64,000 nt of DNA from Rebecca billardiae RCC1528 (Eukaryota > Protista > Haptophyta): positions 2,728,001 to 2,792,000 of the forward strand of contig OZ251224.1 in the NCBI GenBank assembly GCA_965240325.2. The letters are read 5' to 3'. The number at the start of each line of letters is the position of its first letter. Positions within the stretch are counted from its first letter, which is position 1. Positions 36,792 to 59,500 of the stretch are shown here, one piece after another. Both the position numbers and the translations under genes were made by a program. A model generated the notes under the pieces. It was not told the DNA's origin and searched no databases. It saw nothing but the letters and a program-made list of their open reading frames with translations.

Positions 36792-38795
36792 TCACTGCGG
36801 GTTGGCCATCGCTTCTGAGTCCTGCAGGACGTCGTCGTAGTCCGGGCCGAGCACGAGCTCATGCAGCGCCTTCCCCGCGGGCACCATCGGGTAGCAGTGC
36901 TCGTGCTTGTCCACGACGAACTCGGCGAGCGCCGGCTTGTCCTCCTCCGCGAGGAACGCCGCCATCGTCTCCTCGAGCGTGTCGTACGAGTCGCTGCGGA
37001 AGCCGGCGCAGTGCATTGACTGCGCGAGTGCGACAAAGTTGGGGTTGAACTGGCGCGTGGCGGAGTGCTTCTCGTTGAAGAAGAGGTCCTGCCACTGCTT
37101 CACCATCCCCTGGAAGTCGTTGTTCAGCAGGAGCACCTTGATGGGCACGCCGTACTGCGCGGCGGTCACCAGCTCGCACGCGGTCATGATGAAGGAGCCG
37201 TCGCCGTCAATGTCCACGACCATCTTGTCGGGCGCGCCAATCTTGGCGCCGACGGCCGAGGGCACGCCGAAGCCCATCGTGCCGAGGCCGCCGCTGCTCA
37301 CCCACTGCCCGGGGTTCCTGTACCGGAAGAACTGCGCCGCCCACATCTGGTGCTGCCCGACGCCCGTCGTGACGATCACGTCGTCCCTGTGCGCCACCTG
37401 CCGGTAGAACTCAGCGATCACCGCCTGCGGCTTCATGCGGCCCGAGCGGGACTCGCCCTTGCCGTACCGGAAGCCGAACTTCTCCTTGAGCTCGGCGATG
37501 CGCTCGAGCCAGTGCGCGCGCGAGCGGCTCGTGGGCGCGCTGATGCGCGGTAACAAGCGCGCGAGGTTCGGCTTGATGTCGCCCAGCACGGGCACGTTCG
37601 CCGTCACCACCTTGTCGAGCATCGACTGCTCAATCTCGAAGTGGATGATACCGCCGCTGCCGGTCGCGGCCGCCGCGCGCGCCTTCGGCGCAAAGTCGGC
37701 GATGCGGCCGGTGACGCGGTCGTCGAAGCGCGCGCCGAGCGCGATGATCAGGTCCGCCTCCTGCACCGCGTAGTTCGCGCACGCCGAGCCGTGCATCCCC
37801 AGCATGTGCAGCGAGAGCGGGTGGAGCTCGTCGAACGCGCCCAGGCCCTGCAGCGTCGTCGTCACAGGGATCTTGGCCTTCTCCGAGAGCGCGCGGAGCT
37901 CGGCCGAGGCCTGCGAGTTGATCACGCCGGCGCCGGCGTAGATGAGCGGGCGCTCCGCGCGCGCGATCAGGTCCGCCGCCTTGGCCAGCGCGTCCTCCGT
38001 CGAGATCGTCGCGCGGTACAGCGGCTTGGCCGTGTTGTAGGGCTTCGCGTCCGGCTCGACCGTCAGCGTGCCCGCAGTCACGTCCTTGGGCAGATCGACG
38101 AGCACGGGGCCCGGGCGGCCGCTCATGGCGATCTCGAAGGCCTCGTTGATCCGGCGCGGCAGCTCCTCCACCGTGCGCACGAGCACGTTCCACTTCGTGC
38201 ACGACGCCGAGATGCCGACCGTGTCGCACTCTTGGAAGGCGTCCGAGCCGATCGCGTTGGTCGCGACCTGGCCGCAAAAGACGACCATCGGCGTGCCATC
38301 CTTCAGGGCGTCCTGCATCGGCGTGATCAGGTTGGTCGCGCCGGGGCCGCTGGTCACGAGGACCACGCCCGGCTTGCCCGTCACGCGCGCGAAGCCCTGC
38401 GCCATGTGCCCCGCGCCCTGCTCGTGCCGCGAGAGCACAAACTCGATGTGCGGGCTCTCGTAGATGGCGTCGAAGACGGGCAGGATGGCGCCGCCGGGGT
38501 AGCCGAAGAGGTGCGAGACCTTGTGCTCGGCCATCATCTGGTGGAAGATCACGGCACCCGTCTTGCCCACGTAGGGCGTCCACGGGGTTGGCTTGAGCTT
38601 GTCGTGCTCATCCTCCTCGATCACCGGCTCCATCGACTCGGGGAAGGACTCCTTGGGCTCGGCCGCGGCGGGCTTGGGCTGGAGCTGCGCGGGCGTGAAG
38701 CCAGAGCCCCACATCTCCTTCACGCCCAGCGACGACGCGCATCGCGCCGCGCCGAGGCGCAGCAGCGGCCGCGCCAGGAGCGTCCGTCGCAGCAT
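36792..38795 (-). CDS. ILV2: Acetolactate synthase catalytic subunit with a mitochondrial-type presequence, intronless
   Basis: [57 protein letters not shown] and GMVKQWQ motifs; N-terminus [22 protein letters not shown]. Confidence 0.96.
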
Positions 38796-43782: not shown

Positions 43783-46530
43783 TCAGAGGGCGAGCTGCTC
43801 GTGCGTGTACTCCCGCCGGCCGCTCGAGAAGTCGCTCACGGTGTGCCCGTCCTCCGCCGTGGAGACGAGGCGCCAGCGCGTGGTGAGCAGCCCTTCGAGG
43901 CCGACCGGCCCGCGAGCGTGGATGCGGCTCGTGCTGATGCCGACCTCGCATCCGAGCCCGAAGCGGAAGCCGTCGGCGAAGCGCGTGCTCGCGTTGTGGA
44001 ACACGCACGCCGAGTCCACCTGCGAGAGGAAGCTCGACGCCACCGCCGCGTCCTCCGTCAGCACCACCTCGGTGTGCGACGAGCCGTAGCGCGCAATGTG
44101 CGCCACGGCCTCGCTCAGGTCGTCGACCACTTCGACGCAGAGGGTGTTGTCACCGTACTCGGTGCGCAGGTCAGCGGCGGGCTCGAAGCCGAGCGCCTTG
44201 GACGCGCGCGGGCCGCCGACGATGCGCACCCCCGCGGAGGTGAGCGCCGCTGCCAGCTCCTGCGCGGGCGAGCGGCGCGCGCGAGCGGCGCGGTGCGCGA
44301 GCAAGTGAGCGCGTCGTGACAGCGGGCGGCGCGTGTGCGCGCGCGCGCGCGCACGCCGCGTTGCGAGCCTACCGTCGCGCGGCCGTCCTCGACCAAGTCC
44401 ACGTGCACCAGCGCGGTCTCGACCGCGTTGCACGCCGTCGGGTAGTCCAGCTTCGCGTCGGCGAGGACCCGCTTCGCCTTCGCCAGGTCGACCTTGCGGT
44501 CCACGTACGCGTGGCAGATGCCGTCGGCGTGGCCGAGCACGGGGATGGATGAGTTCTGCATCACGTGCTGGACGAGCGCCGCGCCGCCGCGCGGGATGAC
44601 GAGGTCGATCTCCTGCGCGGGGCGGCCGCGGGGCACGCGCGCACGCCGGCCGGGGACCGCGCCACGTGTTGCAGGGCGGGCACGTGGCAGAGCGCGATCT
44701 CGATGTGAGTGCATGAGTGCGTGAGTGAGCCAAGGGCGGGGGCAACTGGGCGCGCGCGCGCGGCCAGGGGCGCGCGCGGGCGCGCGCGCGCGCGCAAGCG
44801 AGGCGCACGGGTCGTAGGGCGCGCACGTGGTGCAGCTTGAGCAGCCCCGACACCTCGGTGCGCGTCTCGAGCAGGCTCACGATCGCGCGGTCGACCGCGC
44901 CGCCCGTCGCCGTGTGCACCGTGTCCGTGATGATCTCGTGCAGCTTGCGGTTCGTCATGATGGCCTCGCGCCCGCCCTTGAGAAGCACGCCGTTGCCCGT
45001 GACGATCGCGAGCGCGGAGACCTGCGGCAGCACGTCGGGGCGCGACTCGAAGATGATGAGCAGCACGCCGATCGCCACCGTCTCCTGCAGCAGCTCGAGC
45101 CCGTCGGCGACGCGCGTGCGCGCCTTCACGCGGCCGAGCGGGTCGTCCTTGCCAGCGAGCGCGCGGATGCCGTCAATGACAGACTTGAGCTTCTTGCCTT
45201 GCACCTCGAGCCGGCCGCGCAGCGGGCCGGTGATCTTCTGGTCGTCCGCCGCCTTGATGTCCAGCGCATTCGCGGCGTAGATCTCGTCCGCCCGGCGCAG
45301 CAGCTCGTCGGCGATCGTGTGGAGCAGCTTCGAGCGCTCGGCGCAGCTCAGCCGCTGCAGCTGCCGGCTCGCCGCGCGCACCGCGGACGCGCGCTCGGCC
45401 GACGCCGACGACTGCGCCGACGACTCCGGCGCAGCGGGGCCGTTGGTCTTGGCGGCGGAGACGCCGTTCGCGCCGGCCGCCCCGGGCTTGGCGCGGCCGC
45501 CACTCGGCAGCGGCGGCGCCACCGCCGCCGCCGCCGCGGCGGCGGCTCCCGCCGCAGCGGCGGTGGCGCTGCCGCGGCGCGGAGCGGAGGCGACGACGCG
45601 GACCGAAGGCGGGAAGAAGAGGGTCCCGACGGTCTCGCCGGCGAAGAGCTTCTCGACTTCGTTGGGCGCGTGGCCCGAGGCGATGGCGACGCAGCCGACG
45701 CCGCTCTCCGCCGCGCGCAGCGCCGCGTCGATCTTCGCGCCCATCCCACCGCGGCCGAGCGACGACTTCTGGCCGATGCTGATCTGCGTGTCCGCGGTGT
45801 ACACGTCGATAATGTCCGGCGGCTGGCCGGGCTCGGGCAGGCAGCGGTACACGCCCTCGACGTCGGAGAGGAGGACGAGGACGTCGGCACCGAGCACGCC
45901 CGCGAGCAGCGACGCGAGCCCGTCGTTGTCCTTGAACGGCGGCTCGGGGCGCGTGGACGGCGAGACGGGCTGCCCGTCGGGCCCGACGGCGGCGGTGAGC
46001 GTGCGGTGCGACGAGATGGCGTCGTTCTCGTTCAGCACGGGGATGGTGTTGTGCTCGAGGAGCCAGGTGAGCGTGTGCTTGAGCTGCGCGACCTGGTTGG
46101 CGTGGGCGAAGTCCGACGGCGAGACCAGCACCTGCGCGCACAGCACGTCGTACTGCCCGAAGAGCTGGTCGTATAGGCCCATCATGCCCGACTGGCCCGC
46201 AGCCGCGCACGCGTTCAGGCTCGCGGGCTCGGGCGCGTTGGTCCCGCCGAGCTGGAGGTGCGCCTGGACGGAGCGGGAGAAGAGGTGCTGGCGGTGCAAC
46301 TTCGACCGGCCAACGCCCACGGCGCCGCTCGAGACCAGGATCACGTCCTTTCCCTGGTGGCGCAGCGCGCTCAGCTGCTCGACAATGTTGCCGATGCGGC
46401 CGAGCGACATCGAGCCGTCGCTGCGGCTGACGGTGCTGGTGCCGACCTTCACGATGACCCGCTTCGCTGAAGTCAGGTCCGCCCGGCAGCGCGGGCGGAA
46501 GCGATCGCCGTCACCGGTCCGCGCGGACAT
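43783..46530 (-). CDS. P5CS: Bifunctional delta-1-pyrroline-5-carboxylate synthase (glutamate 5-kinase plus gamma-glutamyl phosphate reductase); predicted introns 44613-44826 and 44260-44372
   Basis: [80 protein letters not shown] and HARGPVG motifs. Confidence 0.97.
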
Positions 46531-46846
46531 GGCGTCGAGGCTGGCCCTGATGAGGAGCTTGGCGGCCACGGCCACGCGCCCGGCCTCTTCCCCGTGATGC
46601 ACCTCAGACACCGATCCACGATGGTGGCCCGCGGATAATATGAGCTTCACTCAATCACTCGCGTTTCAGACTGTTCGTCCCGCACCGGAGCGCTCCCTTG
46701 ACCGTGCCCTTGAAACGGCTCGCAGTACGAACTTGCGTGCGCCTACGCTTGCTCTCTCCCCTTTCGCTGGCGCGCACGCCGACCAGCAGCCGGTGGCGGA
46801 CGCAGGGTCGCTCGGCCGAGCGCGAAAGAAACACGCACACGAGACG

Positions 46847-48952
46847 ATGGCGACCTCAGATATCGTGGTCCTCGACGGCGAGCAGATGGCGACCGTGCTC
46901 AAGCGGTACGTCGAGATCCTGACGCGAAAGGAGGCGCATCTGCTCGAGCAGGAGGGCTTCTTTAACCGCGAGGAGCACTTCGAGGCGTTCCTCGCCGAGG
47001 TGCGCTCGGAGTTCGACGCGCACCCGAAGATCCGCGCGTGCTTCGCGCACCGCTCCGGCGCGCAGCTGTGCATCGACTTCCTCGTCGGCGACGGCGAGCA
47101 CACGCGCGACGCCGCGTCTGAGACGCGGCGGTACGAGCTCTCGTTCATGTCGACGGTGCTGCTGCGCACGTCCTCGGTGAGCGGCGTGCTCGTGCGCGAG
47201 CCCGAGCTCCTCGCGCGGCTGCTCCAATTCATCGAGCGCCCGCCCAAGCTCGACGACGCCGTGCTGCACTACTGGGGCAAGGTGTTCCGCCACCTGTGCG
47301 CGCTCGGCACGTGCGACGAGCCGCTCGTCGCGCAGGTCGCGTCGCTCGTGCCGCACGTCGCGAACGACTCGATCTGCGCCCTGCTCTCGGAGACGCTCGG
47401 CTCGCTCAGCGGCACGATCAGTCTCCTCCCCTGCCTCGAGAAGGGCGCCAACCCGCTCGGCCCGCTCGTCCAGACGCTCGTCGACTCGGACGCGGGCGCG
47501 CGCAACGCGTGCGAGGTGCTCTGCGCCGTGTGCGTCGCCGTGACGGAGGCGCAGAACAGCGCGGCGCACGGCGCTGTGTGGGCGGCGATCGCGCCGGTCC
47601 TGCCGCGTATGGTCGAGGTGATCTTCGCTGGAGCCATGGCCGCCGGAGCGGCCCAGTACCCCGCGCGCGTCGAGCACTGCCTCTCCTTCCTCGTCGAGCT
47701 GCTGATGCTGCACACGCGAGTGCCGGCCGAGCCGGCGCCCGCCGACGGCGGCGCGCCGCTGCTGCTCGCGCCGCACGTGCGCTCGCTGAGCGCGATGATG
47801 CGCAGCGGGCAGACGTTCGTGCAGCTGAAGGCGGCCGAGCTGCTCACCGTCGCGCTCGTCCTCGTCGAGGAGCACGACGACGACCCCCTCGCCACCGCCA
47901 TCGTCGAGGCGGGCGTGCTGCCCCTCGCAGTCGGCCTCTTCTTTGCGACCGACGTGAACGGCGGCGGCCGTCAGGACTTCCTGCGGCACATCCTGCTGCG
48001 CGTGTTCTGCGAGGCGCTCGCGTGCGACAACGCGCCGGTGCACGCCGCGCTGCTGCACGCCGAGCACGGCGCGCTCACCAAGACCATCGTCCACTCGGCC
48101 GAGCGGCCCGGCGAGCGCGGCTCGGTCACGCACACGCAGATGGCGCTCCGACTCGTGAACGACGCGTGCGATCGCGTGCCGGGGATCGCGGCGATGGTTG
48201 GCAGGACGGCTCGGTGGCGCTCGGCGGTGCAGCAGGTGGTGGGCGTGGTGCCCACCTCGCTCGACGGCATCCCCGAGGACGCGTCCGACGAGCAGGCCGC
48301 CTACGAGCCGCTGCCCGCGCGCGCGGCGGGCCGCGCGCGCGGCGCGCGCGCCGCCAGTGCCAACAGCGAGAACGAAGATCCGCTCAACTCGCCGCCGGCC
48401 GTGGCAGCTGGCGCGGCGGAGGCGGACGGTGGGGCCAAGCGGGCGGGCGGGCGCCCCGGCACGCCGCGGCAGGTCCTCACCCCCGGCTTCGAGAGCGACC
48501 TGGTCGCCGGCCTTCGCGCGCAGCAGCTCGACGATGCGCTCGACGCGGCCGAGGGCGCCGCCGCCAGCGTCCCTGCCGCCGCCGCGCAAGGCGCCGACGC
48601 GCGCGCAGGGCAGATCCACCTCGGCCCGTCGTCGCCCCTGCTCTCGCAGGGGCCGGCACGCTCGCCGCTCGCCGCGCCGAACGCCGACCCCAACGTGCTC
48701 GTGGTCGACGACGACACCTACAAGTCCTCGACCGCGCCGTACTTCGACACGCCCCAGCCCAAGCTGGTCAAGCGCATGTTCTATAACCGCACCGCCAAGG
48801 CCGCGTCGCCCTTCTTCAAGTCGCCCTCGGCGGGCACGCGGGTAGGGCCCGTGGAGGCGAGGGAGGGCGCAGATCTGGGCCCCGCCGGGCAGGTGGGCGC
48901 ACTCGAGCTCGCCGACACCGAGGCAGATCCCACGAAGGCTCTCGCCTTCTGA
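46847..48952 (+). CDS. Divergent SAPS (SIT4/PP6 regulatory subunit)-like helical-repeat protein
   Basis: RRYELSFMSTVLL...ELLARLLQFIERPPKLDDAVLHYWGKVFRHL resembles the SAPS core; disordered Ser/Pro-rich C-terminus. Confidence 0.6.
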   Translation: MATSDIVVLDGEQMATVLKRYVEILTRKEAHLLEQEGFFNREEHFEAFLAEVRSEFDAHPKIRACFAHRSGAQLCIDFLVGDGEHTRDAASETRRYELSFMSTVLLRTSSVSGVLVREPELLARLLQFIERPPKLDDAVLHYWGKVFRHLCALGTCDEPLVAQVASLVPHVANDSICALLSETLGSLSGTISLLPCLEKGANPLGPLVQTLVDSDAGARNACEVLCAVCVAVTEAQNSAAHGAVWAAIAPVLPRMVEVIFAGAMAAGAAQYPARVEHCLSFLVELLMLHTRVPAEPAPADGGAPLLLAPHVRSLSAMMRSGQTFVQLKAAELLTVALVLVEEHDDDPLATAIVEAGVLPLAVGLFFATDVNGGGRQDFLRHILLRVFCEALACDNAPVHAALLHAEHGALTKTIVHSAERPGERGSVTHTQMALRLVNDACDRVPGIAAMVGRTARWRSAVQQVVGVVPTSLDGIPEDASDEQAAYEPLPARAAGRARGARAASANSENEDPLNSPPAVAAGAAEADGGAKRAGGRPGTPRQVLTPGFESDLVAGLRAQQLDDALDAAEGAAASVPAAAAQGADARAGQIHLGPSSPLLSQGPARSPLAAPNADPNVLVVDDDTYKSSTAPYFDTPQPKLVKRMFYNRTAKAASPFFKSPSAGTRVGPVEAREGADLGPAGQVGALELADTEADPTKALAF

Positions 48953-50534: not shown

Positions 50535-52065
50535 CTAGGAGCAGCAGCACGGCCGAGCGCGCTCCGGGAGCCTGCTACTGTGCTACTGTACTAGTATGAG
50601 TACAGACTGTAGTGCGCGCGCTAACGATAAACCGATTGAAACTGATCCAGCGACAGTACACTTATATATTGGCGCAACTGGTGCAGACTCACTCGCGGGC
50701 CGCCCGGTAGCGCGGTCATACGACGAGTGAATACTGTCGCGTTGTGCCTCGTGGACTCCAGTGAGTCGTGGACGTGAATGGCGTGATAACTGATATATAT
50801 ATACTACAAGTACATGTAACATGACGACGATGAAGTACGACGACTGGTTAATAACGTCGGAGTACGACGTTATTAATAACGTCGTCCGAAGCCTCCGAAG
50901 GACCCGACTAGACGACTACACTAGACTGCCAACTTCAGTCTAGTAGTGATGAAGTTGGCAGTAGGCAGCGCGCCCCGGGCGCTGCCAGTGACTATAATAA
51001 GGCAGCGCCCGCGGCCGCGAGCTAGGCGCGACCGTCCGCGCCCCGGTCCGCGGCGCCTCCGCGAGTCGAAGTCACTCGGACACTGGGCACCACTGGCAAC
51101 AGGCAAGTCTGCCGCCCGCGCCGGCCCGCCGAGGCCGCCAGCGCGGCCAGGGCGGCCGGCCCTGACGTCCCGGCCCTGGCCCAGTCACAGTGTCAGTGAC
51201 TCAAGCGCCGGCCTGGCGGCCCTCCCGGCTCCCGCTGAGGGCAGACTCAGTCAGAGTGACTCCGCCTGTCTGGCTGAGTCCCGCGACTGAGCGCGACCGT
51301 CCCGCGGCCCGTCCCGGAGGCCCGGGCCCCGGCGCGGGCCGGCGGCGGCCGGGCGGCGGGCTCGGACCGCGTCGTCCGCGCGGCAGGGACTCCGCCGCGC
51401 CACTCTCCGCCGCCCGTGGGCGTGGCCGTGCCAGGCAGCGGCGGTGTAAATTTCGGACTGCTATTTATATATTGTCCAGATGAGTCGGACTTTCAGCAGT
51501 GACTACTGTAGTGCGGTCTGCTGATAGTGAGTGATGACACGGAACTGCAGAAGTCATCATTGTAAGCTCAAGCTGGTAACCACGCTGCTACGCCTGCGCG
51601 TCTGACTGACTGACGCAGGCGCCAGACCGGAGCCGGTTCGGGTTGGCGGGTCGGTCGGGACTAGGGGGTCGCGCCGGCGCCTCGCGAGACGCGAGTGGGC
51701 ACTGGCAGCATGGCGCGCGGGCCCGCGCGGCACTCGCCGTCTCGCAGTCGCGGCCACCTGGCAATGGCAGGAGCTAGTAGTGACACCTGTGCGCAGCAAC
51801 CAACAACCAGTGTGAGTGTCCATTGACCACCGGCACCTCCCGCATGGCTGCTGGCGGCACCGCGTCCTCAGCTCAGCACCAGCTGATGATGACGCGGAAG
51901 CTCGATCGGCTCGCAGAGGCGCCGGGCCCGCCCTCTGCGGCGCCAGCACCTGCGACGCTTGCGATGCCGCGCGGCAGGCGCCAGGCCCCACCTCGACTCC
52001 CGACTCCATCCGCGCCATAATCTCACCAGTCAGTTCCCACCATGGCTCTCCCCGTCACCGCGCCA

Positions 52066-53061
52066 TCACCTGCGCGCGTCCTGGGTCTCGCGGATGACGG
52101 TCGATGTTTCGCTGTTGCCGCGCGTTGCCACCGCACCAAACTGCGCGCCTGCCACAGCCGCCGCCTCCGCCGCCGACACCATCCTGCCATCAATCATCTG
52201 GCCCGGCCGCAGCTGGAACTTTGCATAGATGCGGGTGAAGTGCGCGAACATGCCGTACATGAAGACGCAGAGAACCGTCGTGATCGACAGCGCGACAGGC
52301 CACGGGAACTCCATCCACGCGAACAGCAGCGCAGAGAAATGGAAGAGCACAACACCTGCGCGCAGACGCGGTCGGCGGCCGCAGCGGGCGGCGAGCAAGC
52401 GCGGCATGAGCGAGCGGTCTGGCTCGCGCGGGCGTGGTCGGCACCGACATCTGCGGGCGCGCACCGAGGATGAAGAACAGAAAGCATACTCGGTACTCCA
52501 CGAGCATGCCGTCGACTGCCGAGTGCATGCTGCCATCGGGCCCACGCAGCGCAAGGCCAGGTCCGAGCATTGCGCACATTGTCGCGTTGAACTGGCAGCG
52601 GGCGCGCGGGAGGGGGTGCATGCCCAAGCCGGGGCCAGGGACGTGAGCGCGGGCGCCTCTGGGCGCGAGTAGCGAGCATAGGCACGCGTGACGGAGGGCT
52701 CGCATCCACACCAGAGCGATGAGCTCGACAGCCATCGCAGAGACGGTGACACAGAAGTAGGCACCCTGCATCAGGTCGCTCGCTGTCTCAGGGACATCAA
52801 CCTGGATGATCCCGGCGTACGCGAAGCCGCTGAGCAGGGCCGACTGTGTGCCGATAGAGATGCAGTTGCGCGTGTAGAAGTCCAGCTCCTTCTCGCGGAT
52901 TTTGATCAGGCTCACCTGCGCGCCATGCGCGCGTGTGCGTGATGTGAGCCAGCCGGCGCGTGCCCGGGTCACATCTAGCAGCCACCGTGCCCACGCGCGG
53001 AGGAGCGCTCGGCGCCCACCTGCAGATTGTTCTCGAGGGCGCGCTTGTCCGCATAGAGCAT
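52066..53061 (-). CDS. Orai-like four-TM protein, paralog A; predicted introns 52916-53019, 52592-52711, 52356-52464
   Basis: Spliced MLYADKRALENNLQVSLIKIREKELDFYTRNCISIGTQSALLSGFAYAGIIQ...LGPGLALRGPDGSMHSAVDGM...; TM1 SALLSGFA is identical to the Orai1 TM1 core. Confidence 0.8.
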
Positions 53062-53208
53062 GTCTCTCGGTCAGGCTGGAGCGCCTGGCGCACTGGCGAC
53101 AGGCGGCGGCGGCTTGAGCGATCCGCTCGCCTTTGAGACGGGTGATGGCGCCCGCGGGCGGCGGGCCGCGGGAGCGAACGAAAGGGGGGCTTGAAAGCTC
53201 CTTGCACG

Positions 53209-53682
53209 ATGGGTGCCGCCACGGGCTTAGCCACGGGGCGTCGTCCGGGGACGGCTGCGCTGCTCCTGGGGGTGGCGGCGGTAGGGGCGGCCCCCGTGCC
53301 GTGTGCCGACCTCGGGTTTGCGCCGACGCTGCTGTGCTCGGCGTGCACCAAGCTGGGTGAGCGTATCGGCGCATCCGATCCTCTCGTCGCCGAGTGTGAG
53401 CGCTGCTGTGCTGAGGATGCCGGTGCGAGCAATCGCAAGTACGCCCGTGCCGTGTTGGAGGTGTGCAAGTGACGACTGGGGAGCTTCCCGAGCATCCGGG
53501 AGTTTCTTGAGACAAGCGCCGACAAGTACAAGAACTTCGAGGTCCGGTACAAGAATGGTGTGCCCCCTACGATGTTCCTCGAGAACGAGAACGGAGAGGT
53601 CGAGGAGGAGCTCAGCCTGAGCCACTGGAAGAGCGAGAATGTCGAGGAATTCTTGCAGGAGAAGCTCATCAGCTTGGAGTAG
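53209..53682 (+). CDS. SELENOF: Selenoprotein F (Sep15) with an in-frame UGA-Sec codon at 53470-53472
   Basis: Signal peptide; C..LGF...LLCS.C...C..CC Cys-rich domain; KYARAVLEVCK-TGA-RLGSFPSIREF...W..ENVEEFL.EKL continues in frame to TAG at 53682; SECIS downstream. Confidence 0.93.
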
Positions 53683-53719
53683 GCAACGATTGGATGACCC
53701 GAGCGGCTTCCGTCCGCGC

Positions 53720-53776
53720 GCAACGTGACGCATCGCCCAGAAACGACGCCCATGTCGAGGGGAGATGCTGAGACCC
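53720..53776 (+). promoter_or_regulatory. SECIS element (type II, GUGA core)
   Basis: GTGA-C-GCATC.CCC..AAA-CGAC(loop)GTCG.GGG..GATGC-TGAG: kink-turn quartet, helix II, unpaired AAA and apical mini-stem. Confidence 0.85.
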
Positions 53777-54513
53777 GAGGCCTACCTGCGAGCTGACTTC
53801 CGATCGCTTCCGCTTGTCACGATCGGTCTGTCCATGGATCCGCGGAGCGGCGCCATGACGGCTTGCAGGATGGCTCACCAGCGCGCGTTGGCGCCCATCG
53901 TCATCGGAACGTACGACGCATATTCTATGAACGCCTATGCCATCGAATCATGGCATCAGTTACTGTAATCCGCGAGTAGTAGTCATCATTATTAGTGCCT
54001 GACTCAGTCTGCACTCAGTCTCAGACCGAATAACTAATAAGTCGGCAATACTCACTTAATACTGATATTACTGTACGGAATACTAGTGGCCAAATTTTAA
54101 TAGTTATTAACTAGCGCTGAGCCAATAACTATATATATATATATTGATTATTAGATATTACTAGCAGCGGCCCGATTCAGACGACTGACGGAGCAAGCAC
54201 GGCCACGGCGCCCACGTCCACGACTCACGAGGCGCGGCTGTGACCGTGACGGCGACGGGCCCGGAGTCGGGGGCCTCACGCCGGTCGGCCCGGTCACCGG
54301 ACCGGGCCGCCGCCGCGCCAGGCCCAGGCCCAGGGCCGGCGGGGCCCTGCAATGCAAGCCCAGCGACCCCGGAGCATCACGCCGGCTCAGCCGGAGACCA
54401 CTCCTCGCCGGGTCGAAGGTGATCTCGCAGGGGGCACCAGTTGATGATCCCGGCTGAGTAGTTACTCGTGTCGTGGGCGGAGTGACGAGTCAGGGGCCTT
54501 GTCGATTTTGCGA

Positions 54514-55157
54514 TTACATTGTGCCGTCAAACTCGCCCGTGACGATGGTGTCTGCAGACAGCTTCAACAGGCGGTAGATACGACGACCTCCACGCCACAT
54601 GGTGATGACCGTCAGGAGGATGAGCACCGTGTTCGGAATCGCGAACTCTGCGCGCACGGAAGGGAGGTGGCGCAAATGAGAGCGGGCCGTCGCACAGTCG
54701 GCTCGCACAGGTGAACGGGGCGCGCACCCCATGTGAACTGCATCCAGTGGTAGAGCAGCGCGCTGAAGTTGAAGCAGAGAAGGCCAAGGCTGAAGCAGGC
54801 GAATGTGAATCGGTAGTGTGTCATCATCCCGTCCACCGCTTTGTGCATGCTTCCATCGGGACCCCGCAGGGCAAGCCCCGGACCGAGAATGGCAACGAGC
54901 GTCGCGTTGACAACGGTGAGCATCTGCAGACCCATGATGAGCGTCGTCACGACAAGGTAAACCGACTGGACGATTTCATTCGCATCCGGCTCCCATGGGA
55001 CCTCGGTCAGCCCGAACCATGCGAATCCAGCCAGGAGTGCTGCCTGCGTCGAGATCGAGAGGCAATTGTTCGTGTAGAACGTGAGCTCACGCTCACGAAT
55101 TCGCAAGAGGTTGACCTTCAGGTTGGTGCGCAGGGCATTCTTGTCGGCGTAGAGCAT
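54514..55157 (-). CDS. Orai-like four-TM protein, paralog B; predicted intron 54648-54727
   Basis: MLYADKNALRTNLKVNLLRIRERELTFYTNNCLSISTQAALLAGFAWFGLTE...LGPGLALRGPDGSMHKAVDGM...FTW|EFAIPNT; clearly homologous to 52066-53061. Confidence 0.8.
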
Positions 55158-56058
55158 GGCCTACAGCTGCGAGCTGAACTCTCAGCTCTGGAGTGAGCGG
55201 ACGGTGCGCGCTCCTACGCCGCAGTTGAGCTCGCCGCCCCCATTTGCGGGCGCTGCCCTGGCAAGAGTGTTGCCTGCTTGGCAGCTTGGACAGCTTTGAG
55301 CTTCCGGAATTCCGGGGAGCCCTGGGAGAGTGGGAGGCCGTGCCGGTCCTGCTGCCCCGGCCCCGGCCGGTGCGTGCACGCCAAAGCTCCGAAAGCATGC
55401 ATGCACACCACCAATGCCGCATGCGGGCGATGCGGCCACAACTCCCATGGCGGCGCTTGGCTGCCGCGGGGGTGCCTGAGGTGAATACCCCGCGAGGCGT
55501 GGCAAGATGTGCGGCCTTCTCGTGGTCGTCGCCTCCTCCATGGCCAGTTGCCAGCAGCAGAGCCGCAGCGCCATCGCTGCGCATGGCAAGGTTGGATACG
55601 TCGGCCAGGCCTCGGCCAGCCTTGCCGGCTGCGCCGCCACATCATCAGCAGCCTGAAGTTGCCAGCATCATCCAATTGTAGTGTGAAGTCGCGTCGTTAG
55701 TCAGCAAACAATGGGGCCCGCTGTGAGATGACAGGTCCGAGATGACTGCGGTACTCCGCCGTCCACGCCGCCGTCGCGCCGGGCCCGGCCGCCCCCGGGC
55801 CAGGCCCAGTACTGCCCCACACGGCTACTCCGAGGCTCATAGTAGCTACTGCAGCTGCTTATGCACGGTCCATTCACTCTAAGTGCCGTGACCGTGCGGC
55901 CGTGCCCGGAGTGACTGATCATTGTAGCGGCGCTGCAAGCGCGCCGAGTTCCGACACTGGTCTCGTGCGCAGTATCGTCGTCGTAGCCGTGCGACACACT
56001 CACACAGCGCTCCTGCCGCCGGCAATGGTTATGGTGCGTGAGCTCGAGGCATGCCGCA

Positions 56059-58888
56059 CTACGAGAGCGGGCTCGTCCGCACGCTGCCGCCCGTAGCGAC
56101 ACGGCCCGCCACGGTCGACACCGCCTGCCAGGCGCCGTGCGGGGTGGCCGCACGCTGCGCGGCGGTCGGCCGCAGCAGCCGCTGCAGCAGCCGCTTGAGC
56201 TCCGCGCGCGCGGCCTCCAGCTCGTGCCGCGACGGCCCGGCGGGCTGCCTGCCCCGCCGCCTGCCGGGCGCGTCGTCCTCGTCCTCGTCCTCGTCGCTGT
56301 CGCTGCCACCGCCCACGCCGATCTCCCGGCGGAGATCGTCGTCCATCTCAATATCCATCTCCTCAGCAGCGCGCTGCAGCCAATCAGCTTTCGCCTTGGC
56401 CTTGCGCTCGGTGTGCAGCTGCTGGTCGAGCTTGGCGGCGAGGTGTATGGCGCGGTGCACGCGCGGGAGCACCTCGCTCAGCACGCCGAGGCCCTCGAAC
56501 CGCTGGAACCCCTCCGCGCCCATCCCCAGCCCGTGCGCGATCGTCCGGTACCGCTTCTCCTCGGCAGGCTCGACGAGCGCGATCGACAGGCCGTCCGAGC
56601 GCGCGCGCGCCGTGCGGCCCGAGCGGTGCACGTACGTCTCGACGGTGTGCGGCAGCTGGTAGTGCACGACGTACTCGAGGCCCTTGATGTCGAGCCCGCG
56701 CGCCGCCACGTCCGTCGCGAGGAGGACGGCGCCATCCTGCGGGAGCGCGCGCGGGGAAGGGCCAAAGCCGTGACACACGTGTGAGTGAGTCGCGCGAGCG
56801 CGCGGCGTGGCGCGGGCGGCGGGCCGCGGCGCGGCGCGCCGCGCCGCGCTCGCTCGCGCTCACGAGCTTCTTGAACTTGTCGAGGTGCTGGAGCCGCTGG
56901 CGCTGCTGCATCGACGCGTGCAGCGTCACGGTGGGCAGCTCGAGCAGCGGCAGCAGCGCGCCCAGCCGCCGGATGCACGCGATCGAGTTGGCGAACACGA
57001 TGCCGCGCCGCGGCCGCAGCGAACAGAGCAGGGTGAACAAAATCGCTTCCTTGTCTGCAGCGACGCAGGCGAGCTTGCGCTGCTGGAGCGTCTCGACGGT
57101 GAGCTGCTCGCGCGAGAGGTCGACCGTGTGCACCGGGCGGTGGAAGCGCAGCTTGTCGAACAGCCGCAGCATCGCCGGGTTCTCCCCGCCGCCCGCCACC
57201 GCCGCCATGTCGGCGGGCGGCGCGGGCGCCGGGCGCCCCTTCTTGCCGCCCTTGCGGCCGCCCTTGCCCTTGGGCGCGGCCGCGGCGCCGCGCTTGCGCC
57301 GGAGCTCGGCGGGTAGCGTGAGCGTGGCCGAGAAGAGGAAGGTCTGGCGCGGGGGCGCGCGCGGCGCCGCGCGCGCCTCCGCGCGCGCGCCCTCCTCCTC
57401 CTCCTCGCCGCCGCCGCCATCGCCACCGTCGTCGCCGTCGCCGTCGCCGCCCTCGCCCTCGCCCTCGCCGCCGGTCGCGTCGGCGGCCGACGGCGCCACC
57501 CCGCCTTCGACCATGTCGACGATGGCGCCGAGCTCGGCGAAGTGGCCGGGCGCGACCATCCGATCGGCCTCGTCGAGCACGAGGAAGCGCACGCGCGAGA
57601 GCCGCGCCAGGTGCGCGTCCGAGTGCTGCGTGAGCAGCTCCCACAGCCGCCCCGGCGTGGCGACAATCACCGCAGGCCGCTTGGTGAGAAGTCGCCGTTG
57701 CTTCGGGATGGCCATGCCGCCGACAAGCGCGATCACGCGCGTGTCAGGCGAGCGCGGGAGCACGGCGGCGAAGTGCTCGGCCACCTGCAGCGCGAGCTCG
57801 CGCGTGGGCAGCAGGATGAGCGCCGTCGGCGCGTCCGCGGCGCCGTGCTGCTCCCCGTCCTCGCCAGCGCCGCCGTCGTCACCGCCGCCGCCGTCACCGC
57901 CGCCGTCGTCACCGCGGCCGGCAGCGACCTCGTCGTCGCCCTCGCCCTCGCCTCCGCCCTCCGCGGTCGCGCGGCGCGGCGAGGGGTCGTGCGCGCCGGC
58001 GGCGCGGCGCGCGGTGAGCAGGTGGTGCGCGATGGGCAGCGCAAACGCCAGCGTCTTCCCCGAGCCCGTCTCCGCCGCGCCGATCACGTCCATCCCCTGG
58101 GCAATGGCCGCCGGCACGCACGCCGCCTGGATGGGGGTCGGCTGGCTGAAGCCGACGCGCGACAGCGCGCGCAGCAGCGAGCGGTGCAGCCCGAGCGGGC
58201 GCCACGCGTCGACGCTCACCGGTGCCGTTGACGTGCGCCCACCATCCGCAGGCTGCGCCGCGCCCCGGCCGGCGCCACCATCGCTACCGCCCTCGCGCGC
58301 GCTCTCGACGGCCGAGGCCGCACCGCCCGCGTCGCCCGGCGCTGCGGCTGCGAGCTTGCGCGACTTGGCCGCGCCCGCCGGCTTCGCGTCGGGCGTGGCG
58401 CCCGCCGGCCGTGCCTTCGGGCCGGCATCGGCCGCTTCGCGCTTGCGCTTGCGAGCTCCATCCACCGCCTCCTCCGGCTCGGCCTGGCACGCGGGCTCGG
58501 CGCCGAGCGCACCCTCCCGCGCCGCCAGCTGCTCCCTGCGGCGCTGTTTGGCCAGCCGCCGCCGCTCAGCCTTGGGGAGCTTCTCCGGCGCGGCGAGCTC
58601 CCCCTCGCCATGCGCATCTGCGCCACGAGCGCGCGCTCTGTCGCCGTCATCTGCCCCCGCATCCTTCCCGCTCGCCGCGGCTGCGGTGCGCTTGCTCGCG
58701 TCCGGCTTGGCCGGCTTGCCTGTCGGCACGGTCGTCATGCGCTTGCTGAACTCCTCGCCGTCGATCTCCTCGAGGCCGAGAATCCCACCCTCCTGACTGT
58801 ACCGCATCCACTCCAGGTCGAGAGGGACGTCGTTCCAGACCTGGTCGCGATCCGCGGCGCCGCGCGTGCCGCCCTTGTTCTTCCCCAT
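56059..58888 (-). CDS. DDX24: DEAD-box RNA helicase, DDX24/MAK5 family; predicted intron 56737-56863
   Basis: [94 protein letters not shown]. Confidence 0.93.
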
Positions 58889-59500
58889 GCTGCGCGGAGT
58901 GCGGACGTGAGCACGCGGCCAGCGTATCCCGCGTGCATTCGTGCAAAGCGGATTTTGCAGGACCGGAGTACCGGACTCCATTTACGGCGGCCGCGTGAGG
59001 ACGTGCGCCGCGGAACGCCGCCACTCTCTAATCAAGGGCCTTGTCTAACTGTAATGACTAGCTAGCTACCTCGCCAGGCTCCTGGTCTCAGTCTGTGACG
59101 ATGCGCAGTTCTGTGATCATCGATATTCGATGCCACCACCGACTCATCAGCTGATATATAGCGTGGCAGTGACGATGTCTTAGACGACGATACTCATTGA
59201 TGGCTTCAGAGCTGGTAGCAAGCTAGTCAGGAGGCTACGAGCACGAGCAGCCGCGCCCAGACCGTGGCGGGTGCACGATTGCGCAGCCGCCTGCCGCCTC
59301 GCCGGGCTGTGAAGTGTGAGCACAGCGGTCGCTTGTGGTCGTTGCCGATGCGGATTCCCAACTCCCCAAAGATGACGCCCGCTCGTGCTCGCCGGTTGCG
59401 CGCACAGAGTGCGCGCCCCCAGCTACCGCCGTGCGCCGGGCAACTCGCCGCGCGGCCGGGGCTGGGACCAGCCCAGCCTCGACCACAGCGCGGCGCCGGC

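Follow-up and report, generated by a model that had tools for sequence, protein, structure and literature searches.

Two genes for Orai-like proteins lie on either side of a selenoprotein gene in the haptophyte Rebecca billardiae RCC1528. Do they encode a dedicated, redox-linked Ca2+ channel, or does their arrangement have another history? The question arises from positions 52,066 to 55,157 of a 64,000-nucleotide stretch, here called the window (NCBI GenBank assembly GCA_965240325.2, contig OZ251224.1, positions 2,728,001 to 2,792,000 of the forward strand). The two genes, A and B, each encode a protein with four transmembrane helices (4-TM; TM1 to TM4), and the gene between them encodes selenoprotein F (SelenoF, or Sep15). 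A preliminary description of the locus proposed that B, which has Glu at the selectivity-filter position of Orai1 (E106), is the conducting subunit and A, which has Gln there, the modulatory subunit of a possibly STIM-independent heteromeric channel. Both were thought to be co-regulated with SelenoF in a redox-coupled Ca2+ module, although chance clustering was admitted as a caveat. Our analysis points to a different reading, to which we give a probability of roughly 65%: A and B are intact and belong to a family of divergent Orai-type 4-TM proteins that has undergone a large expansion throughout the haptophytes, and the link to SelenoF is microsynteny. B falls into the one orthogroup in which the pore Glu is retained, itself very strongly conserved, and A into one of several old orthogroups in which Gln is fixed.

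Two intact Orai homologues with different pore residues

A and B are almost certainly homologues of Orai that represent a divergent branch. Searches with the window genes were run exon by exon, and database orthologues were used for whole-protein profiles and folds, with P0009 standing in for B (90% identical over exon 1) and P0096 for A, of which it is the closest relative. Against the Pfam Orai-1 family (PF07856, cut-off 25 bits), exon 1 of B gave a borderline score of 26.1 bits, and exon 2 of A alone, a piece of 68 amino acids (aa), gave 19.5 bits, below the cut-off. In the PDB, the matches of the family profiles A1 and A4 (44 and 40 members) were confined to Orai chains, at 1e-7 and 7e-8, respectively. 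AlphaFold2 models of P0009 and the A-clade protein P0096, with predicted local distance difference test (pLDDT) values of 83 and 86, each consist of four long helices. When these two orthologue models were compared with the PDB using Foldseek, as the preliminary description had suggested for the window proteins, Orai chains were matched before anything else: the top 8–10 hits were all Orai, with a probability of 1.0, a TM-score (target) of 0.5–0.72 and 15–22% identity. The nearest ESM Atlas clusters were all from Haptophyta, and the next named family after Orai was Jiraiya.

Both genes are intact and lie on the minus strand, with SelenoF on the plus strand, so the picture of two same-strand paralogues around SelenoF was correct. 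The models of A and B were drawn by eye and then checked by tblastn of transcript-derived and annotated orthologues and by splice dinucleotides; transcript-derived (MMETSP) orthologues were found for family genes. The product of B has 187 aa and comes from two exons. Exon 1 (55157..54728, ATG at 55157-55155) is an open reading frame (ORF) of 143 codons plus 1 nt that encodes the N-terminal helix and TM1 to TM3 and is of the Glu type (E-type). An 80-nt GT..AG intron in phase 1 follows (54727..54648), placed by tblastn of transcript-derived orthologues and its splice dinucleotides, and exon 2 (54647..54514) adds TM4 and a short C-terminal tail before the stop codon TAA. Gene A encodes 220 aa in four exons, which are separated by introns of 104, 120 and 109 nt, all GT..AG. 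Exon 1 (53061..53020, ATG at 53061-53059) contributes 14 codons, and exon 2 (52915..52712), of the Gln type (Q-type), contributes 68 codons that cover TM1 and most of TM2. The end of TM2, the invariant GPGLALRGPDGSMH turn and the start of TM3 are encoded by exon 3 (52591..52465; 42 codons plus 1 nt), and the end of TM3, TM4 and the C-terminal tail by exon 4 (52355..52066), which ends in TGA. Counted exon by exon, A and B are 49% identical (87/177).

Pore positions were mapped using a HMMER alignment of B exon 1 to Drosophila Orai (dOrai), in which Glu52, Phe48 and Thr37 of B lie opposite dOrai E178, V174 and K163, corresponding to human E106, V102 and R91. Codon 52 is GAG (Glu) in B (55004..55002, minus strand) and CAG (Gln) in A (52804..52802, minus strand). 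At codon 48, the V102 position, B has TTC (Phe) and A has GCC (Ala). The Q/E split and the Ala/Phe difference that had been read from the locus earlier thus hold codon by codon. Also in line with the earlier reading, the basic residue equivalent to R91 is missing in both proteins: codon 37, aligned with dOrai K163, encodes Thr in A and B, and no Lys or Arg was found at i-4 or i-8 from Thr37 in the exon translations of either gene. The GPGLALRGPDGSM stretch that had been noticed in both genes is indeed present, and it is invariant across the family.

In both orthologue models, TM1 is unbroken from residue 2 to residue 51/52, suggesting that the first 25 residues, which are conserved, extend the pore helix into the cytosol. 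Between TM2 and TM3, the invariant RGPDG is modelled as a tight cytosolic turn. TM4 of the P0009 model ends at residue 171 and is followed by a 4-residue helix; the tail of B has about 16 residues.

With animal Orai (human Orai1 and Drosophila Orai; PDB 4HKR, 6BBF and 7KR5), the haptophyte proteins have in common the four TM helices, the fold and an ALL[AS]GFA motif in TM1, and B also has Glu at the outer end of this helix. They differ in that overall identity is only 15–22%, that Thr, Leu/Ile and Thr occupy the positions of R91, K87 and R83, and that Phe or Ala occupies that of V102. Moreover, they start about 25 residues before TM1 and have no long N-terminus, their short C-terminal tail has no evident M4-extension coiled coil (judged by eye on model and sequence), a tight, invariant GPGLALRGPDG turn replaces the long loop 2, and no SOAR partner was found in the genome. 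Compared with the Orai1 E106Q mutant, A carries the same change, one base away from the codon of B, but its Gln is natural, has been fixed in several orthogroups across deep haptophyte divergence together with a small residue at position 102, and does not represent a loss-of-function lesion within a family that is otherwise of the Glu type.

An old family across haptophytes

A family profile search of the 72-Mb assembly returned at least 17 loci, whose signature is an MLYADK start together with the invariant cytosolic turn. Across these loci, the E106 position is occupied by E, Q, M, V, S, N, T or Y. Glu is carried by B and by a single divergent copy on contig C20, the latter with Thr at the 102 position; Gln is found in A and in copies on C10 and C16; and the remaining loci carry M, V, S, N, T or Y. 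Two further loci, both on C11, are canonical-like Orai genes whose two exons score 60 and 44 bits; positions 102 and 106 are occupied by V and E.

The closest named relatives all come from haptophytes. Over exon 1, B is 90–95% identical to its Pavlovales orthologues; its identity is 90% to the Diacronema lutheri and Pavlovales sp. CCMP2436 proteins and 79% to a protein of Prymnesium parvum. The genome is accordingly probably that of a pavlovophyte. In a maximum-likelihood tree of 96 rows, from which fragments and rows shorter than 170 aa were left out, all sequences with WYGLTE or WFGLTE formed one orthogroup that comprises Pavlovales and Prymnesiophyceae, and the Glu did not vary within it. 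Sequences bearing Gln fell into at least three separate clades. A grouped with P0096 (Gln) and P0117 (Gly) of D. lutheri at a support of 95/96, a position that is less secure because A was entered as exon 2 only. The sister of this group was a YNGIIQVDIP group that includes Prymnesium P0135 and Chrysochromulina P0158. Motif tallies gave 46 E, 55 Q and 12 other residues in a first search, and 60 Q, 5 E and 1 G in a second.

The E/Q dichotomy, which the preliminary description had wished to see traced through haptophytes, is therefore present there and is old and conserved. The split is real, ancient and under selection, and it belongs to the whole family rather than to the A/B pair. A is very probably a functional gene under selection. 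We also considered whether A might be a pseudogene, which is ruled out by its intact four-exon frame and by the Gln kept in more than 100 relatives, and whether A and B might be recent tandem duplicates, which is ruled out by their placement in different ancient clades.

Pavlovales, Prymnesium and Chrysochromulina are not known to calcify. As the orthogroups are common to these lineages, the ORAI expansion seems to predate calcification and to have no connection with it. For Emiliania, an expansion of ORAI has been reported and speculatively tied to coccolith calcification (Schaffer et al. 2020, PMC7016017). The present family resembles it in belonging to the same phylum and in its many ORAI-family paralogues, and differs from it in that its orthogroups are common to the three lineages above; the passages of that paper searched here mention no split between Glu-keeping and Gln-fixed orthogroups. 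In diatoms, a second, divergent Orai clade exists beside a canonical-like Orai, and STIM is confined to animals (Murphy et al. 2024, PMC11085791). The haptophyte family likewise forms a second Orai clade beside a canonical-like Orai in a chlorophyll-c alga, but the diatom clade is reported to keep the Glu equivalent to E178, whereas most haptophyte family members do not.

Several other loci of the genome were recorded. The two canonical-like Orai genes (C11:889857-890430, plus strand, and C11:1088752-1089325, minus strand) are about 200 kb apart, have identical TM1 sequences and look like a segmental duplication. On C23 (1290168-1294391, minus strand, and 1319004-1320164, plus strand), three similar N/S-type members that start with MLYA[TF]KRELHAEL are separate genes; two of them form a tandem with 3 kb between them, and the third, at a distance of 25 kb, has the opposite orientation. 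A single 4-TM module at C7:3208616-3209218 (plus strand), with TVLLAGFALSF in TM1, follows about 180 unrelated residues. It matches Pfam Orai weakly (E 0.2), is the only one of its kind in the genome and stands outside the MLYADK family.

Linkage to SelenoF

The start codons of A and SelenoF are divergent and separated by 147 bp (53062..53208), exactly the distance given in the preliminary description; this spacer is presumably a shared promoter region. Among about 19 family loci in 72 Mb, the number of pairs expected by chance at a distance of 3.1 kb or less is only 0.015, so the linkage of A and B does not reflect random placement. On the D. lutheri contig JAGTXO010000021.1, the A-clade gene P0117 stands head-to-head with Sep15 at a distance of 97 bp, and the B orthologue lies 12.3 kb from this pair, with six genes between and on the strand opposite to P0117. 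Because B, SelenoF and an A-clade gene are linked in D. lutheri as well, the linkage predates the split of the two genomes.

The D. lutheri copy beside Sep15 (P0117) has Gly in place of Gln and the longest branch in its clade. P0096, the well-conserved Gln copy of that species, maps to a different contig, and the 10 kb around it contain no Sep15. In the contigs of six relatives (D. lutheri, CCMP2436 and four metagenomic or Logan contigs), the B orthologue was not adjacent to Sep15 or to an A-type gene; its immediate neighbours in several relatives are an S1-domain gene and a gene for a cyclic nucleotide monophosphate (cNMP)-binding protein. Six-frame searches of the Prymnesium and Chrysochromulina A-clade loci detected no Sep15. 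A word search with the C-terminal piece of SelenoF also gave no candidate, a blank that carries no weight given its length window and the truncated gene models of selenoproteins. Of the SelenoF linkage that had been anticipated in relatives, the A-clade/Sep15 pair in D. lutheri was thus recovered, but no counterpart was found in Prymnesium or Chrysochromulina. Within the R. billardiae genome, the other three Sep15/SelM genes are on contigs without Orai-like family members.

The distance between A and SelenoF also has a simple context. Among divergent pairs in three D. lutheri loci, all 11 of 11 spacers between coding sequences (CDS) were shorter than 160 bp, which makes 147 bp ordinary. Alignment of the A-SelenoF spacer with its 97-bp counterpart in D. 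lutheri revealed no convincing common motif. A second head-to-head pair in the window, consisting of an amino-acid-kinase/aldehyde-dehydrogenase gene (P5CS-like, 43783-46650) and a 770-aa ORF without a Pfam match (46640-48952), is kept as a unit in D. lutheri, where its orientation is inverted relative to the Sep15/A pair. The most economical interpretation is that divergent pairs with very short shared spacers come through micro-rearrangements undivided, irrespective of the proteins encoded. In addition, the predicted luminal or external loops of A and B (residues 53-60 and 141-142, with helix limits taken from the orthologue models) contain no Cys and no N-glycosylation sequon, so we see no chemical handle for SelenoF. 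With Gly in the D. lutheri copy, no pairing detected at the A-clade loci of Prymnesium and Chrysochromulina and an ordinary spacer, a redox-coupled Ca2+ module is not supported, and functional coupling of these proteins to SelenoF is improbable. The proximity of SelenoF is probably the retained microsynteny of a divergent pair and not a functional redox-Ca2+ unit.

The SelenoF CDS itself (53209..53682, plus strand) begins with ATG at 53209, has an in-frame TGA at 53470-53472 after Cys-Lys (CKU) and ends with TAG at 53680-53682. The sequence after the TGA matched Pfam Sep15_SelM (PF08806) at 1.2e-18 (67 bits), and the score rose to 79 bits when the TGA was read through; a Pfam scan of the N-terminal piece gave no match. 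The CK-TGA-RLGSFPSIREFLETSA junction recurs in the D. lutheri Sep15 orthologue. Ahead of the redox motif, the two species have six Cys in common, and the N-terminal part is 56% identical. This Cys-rich part may correspond to the UGGT-binding domain that separates Sep15 from SelM. The 3' untranslated region (3'UTR) holds a stem-loop (53725..53772, plus strand) resembling a selenocysteine insertion sequence (SECIS), with the pattern GUGA...AAA...UGA in the centroid fold. In D. lutheri, 12 pairs of this hairpin are kept, 4 of them by compensatory changes. An Rfam scan of 51000-56500 at E<=1 found neither a SECIS nor any other RNA family. The gene resembles known SelenoF in its Sep15_SelM domain and CxU motif with UGA, and may do so in its Cys-rich N-terminus and SECIS-like 3'UTR hairpin. 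It differs in having CKU, where the redox motif of human SelenoF is CGU, in a GUGA in place of the AUGA quartet, and in being missed by the Rfam SECIS models. Three more Sep15/SelM loci lie at C14:513867, C1:766533 and C21:368189, and all four loci of the genome have an in-frame TGA.

Other features around these genes were also recorded. SelenoF and B, at their 3' ends, are separated by an AT-rich island (54000-54199; GC 37.5% compared with 58-80% around it) that contains a (TA)n run. The island occurs only once in the genome and is no repeat. Upstream of B is an 865-aa ORF with a DEAD/DEAH helicase domain (56387-58981, minus strand), and the 1.2 kb between the two contains no recognisable gene. 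A homologue of thiamine pyrophosphate (TPP)-dependent enzymes (36834-38738) belongs to the same syntenic block as the 43783-48952 pair. In D. lutheri, a gene annotated as 440 aa without a Pfam match (L010:13845-15167, minus strand) holds a full S-type family module (148 bits). This module is about 4.5 kb from the B orthologue, so that a local cluster exists there too, with another partner.

Possible channel function and competing readings

Because a STIM-independent channel had been proposed, we looked for STIM in the genome. A search of the 72-Mb assembly for the SOAR domain (PF16533) at E<=10 gave no candidate. On the same contig as the window, however, about 1 Mb upstream, there is a 1108-aa ORF (C5:1727410-1730735; L052:3410-6736, plus strand) with a signal-like N-terminus, two EF-hand+SAM modules parted by FN3 domains, one TM helix and a weak FYVE-like tail. 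The best PDB matches of one EF-SAM module were STIM2 (4e-7) and STIM1 (1e-5). From its domain content, this protein is a candidate luminal Ca2+ sensor without SOAR. The idea of STIM-independence is therefore less clear than it first appeared: it is accurate to say that the genome has no SOAR-type STIM, but it would be wrong to say that it has no STIM-like sensor.

By analogy with Orai, B-type subunits would form a ring with TM1 lining the pore. Glu52 would be the outer cation (Ca2+) site, and Phe45 and Phe/Tyr48 may act as a hydrophobic gate. The basic inner pore of animal Orai would be missing, with Thr37 at the place of R91. Gating would occur without a SOAR-type STIM and would probably involve the invariant TM2-TM3 turn together with the conserved N-terminal helix, which is continuous with TM1. 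Subunits of the A type would present a neutral Gln ring and a small gate residue, and may be functional proteins with altered permeation or a regulatory role. On this analogy we lean towards B forming a cation/Ca2+ pore through its Glu52 ring, and, to a similar degree, towards Q-types differing in permeation or acting as regulators. Three points weigh against our overall account. What is said here of channel activity, ion selectivity, membrane location and stoichiometry is carried over from Orai. In a homomeric E-type ring, the Phe/Tyr at the V102 position might block the pore. Finally, the A-clade/Sep15 pair and the linkage of B have been kept despite an N-terminal identity of SelenoF of only 56%, which might point to selection for co-regulation.

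It is established that Orai paralogues co-assemble, which lends some plausibility to the original proposal that B (conducting, Glu) and A (modulatory, Gln) form a STIM-independent heteromer, co-regulated with SelenoF as a redox-coupled Ca2+ module. The same proposal gains from the A-B linkage and the head-to-head A-clade/Sep15 pair seen in both genomes, from the complementary residues of the two types (an aromatic residue with Glu, small residues with Gln), and from the use of E106Q as a dominant-negative pore mutant (PMC3050638). Yet there are at least 17 paralogues rather than two, and eight different residues at the E106 position, so a dedicated two-subunit channel is not supported. The syntenic copy of D. 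lutheri has Gly and its Gln copy is unlinked, B and SelenoF are not adjacent in the contigs of the six relatives, and neither the A-clade genes of Prymnesium and Chrysochromulina nor the contigs of the other three Sep15/SelM genes show the pairing. The predicted loops, without Cys or sequon, add to this. The association of an aromatic residue with Glu represents a single evolutionary event, and the E-bearing paralogue on C20 has Thr there. We consider the module quite improbable; obligate or preferred E/Q heteromers, taken by themselves, are less so, although still unlikely. Coincidence, with A and B as neighbours by chance or A as a dying duplicate of B, is favoured by high gene density alone. 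The chance expectation of 0.015 pairs, the linkage in D. lutheri and the placement of A and B in different ancient clades largely refute chance clustering, and the intact frame of A and the wide retention of its Gln contradict decay, leaving this explanation very improbable.

A different arrangement, in which the E-type is a common pore subunit that joins any variable paralogue (Q/M/S/N and others) in combinatorial heteromers and the SelenoF linkage is irrelevant, would suit the E-type, which looks single-copy and is far more conserved than any other member: its sequences in this genome and in Prymnesium are 79% identical (over 141 aa), whereas the A-clade reaches about 60%. In addition, the ring of Phe/Tyr48 is bulky and may need partners with small residues, and both types are present in all named haptophyte genomes seen. 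However, strong conservation fits a homomeric essential channel equally well, and because every genome has both types, their co-occurrence is uninformative; we regard this arrangement as doubtful. Somewhat less probable again is that Q-types such as A are non-channel membrane regulators or scaffolds derived from Orai. E106Q abolishes Orai1 conduction, and Jiraiya/TMEM221, the next named Atlas family after Orai, offers a parallel, as it is described as an Orai-derived 4-TM protein without the Ca2+-binding residues (PMC7016017). Jiraiya nevertheless differs in being confined to animals, with an Atlas feature score of 0.80 and no common signature turn, and Q-types have kept the ALL[AS]GFA motif (G98/F99 equivalents), the TM2-TM3 turn and the fold to the same degree as the E-type. 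At a similarly low level of likelihood, these elements could be combined into a system without a SOAR-type STIM. In such a system, a near-invariant Glu subunit (the B orthogroup) would join interchangeable Gln/Met/Ser/Asn paralogues that tune permeation, gating would take place through the GPGLALRGPDG turn, possibly under the EF-SAM protein, and in Pavlovales the A-clade/SelenoF pair would tie one subunit to protein folding in the endoplasmic reticulum. We prefer the reading of A and B as members of a haptophyte-wide Orai-type expansion whose neighbour SelenoF has been retained by microsynteny.

Orai is known almost only as the STIM-gated calcium release-activated calcium (CRAC) pore of animals. 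This locus shows a large, old and sharply defined haptophyte Orai subfamily, in which the selectivity Glu was kept in one orthogroup, whereas other orthogroups kept Gln, a pore-killing residue in Orai1, under long-term purifying selection. The presence of these orthogroups in non-calcifying lineages argues against the role in coccolith formation that has been suggested in print for the haptophyte ORAI expansion. The subfamily amounts to a natural experiment on Orai permeation and assembly, and its members are candidate routes of Ca2+ entry in an algal phylum of great ecological importance.

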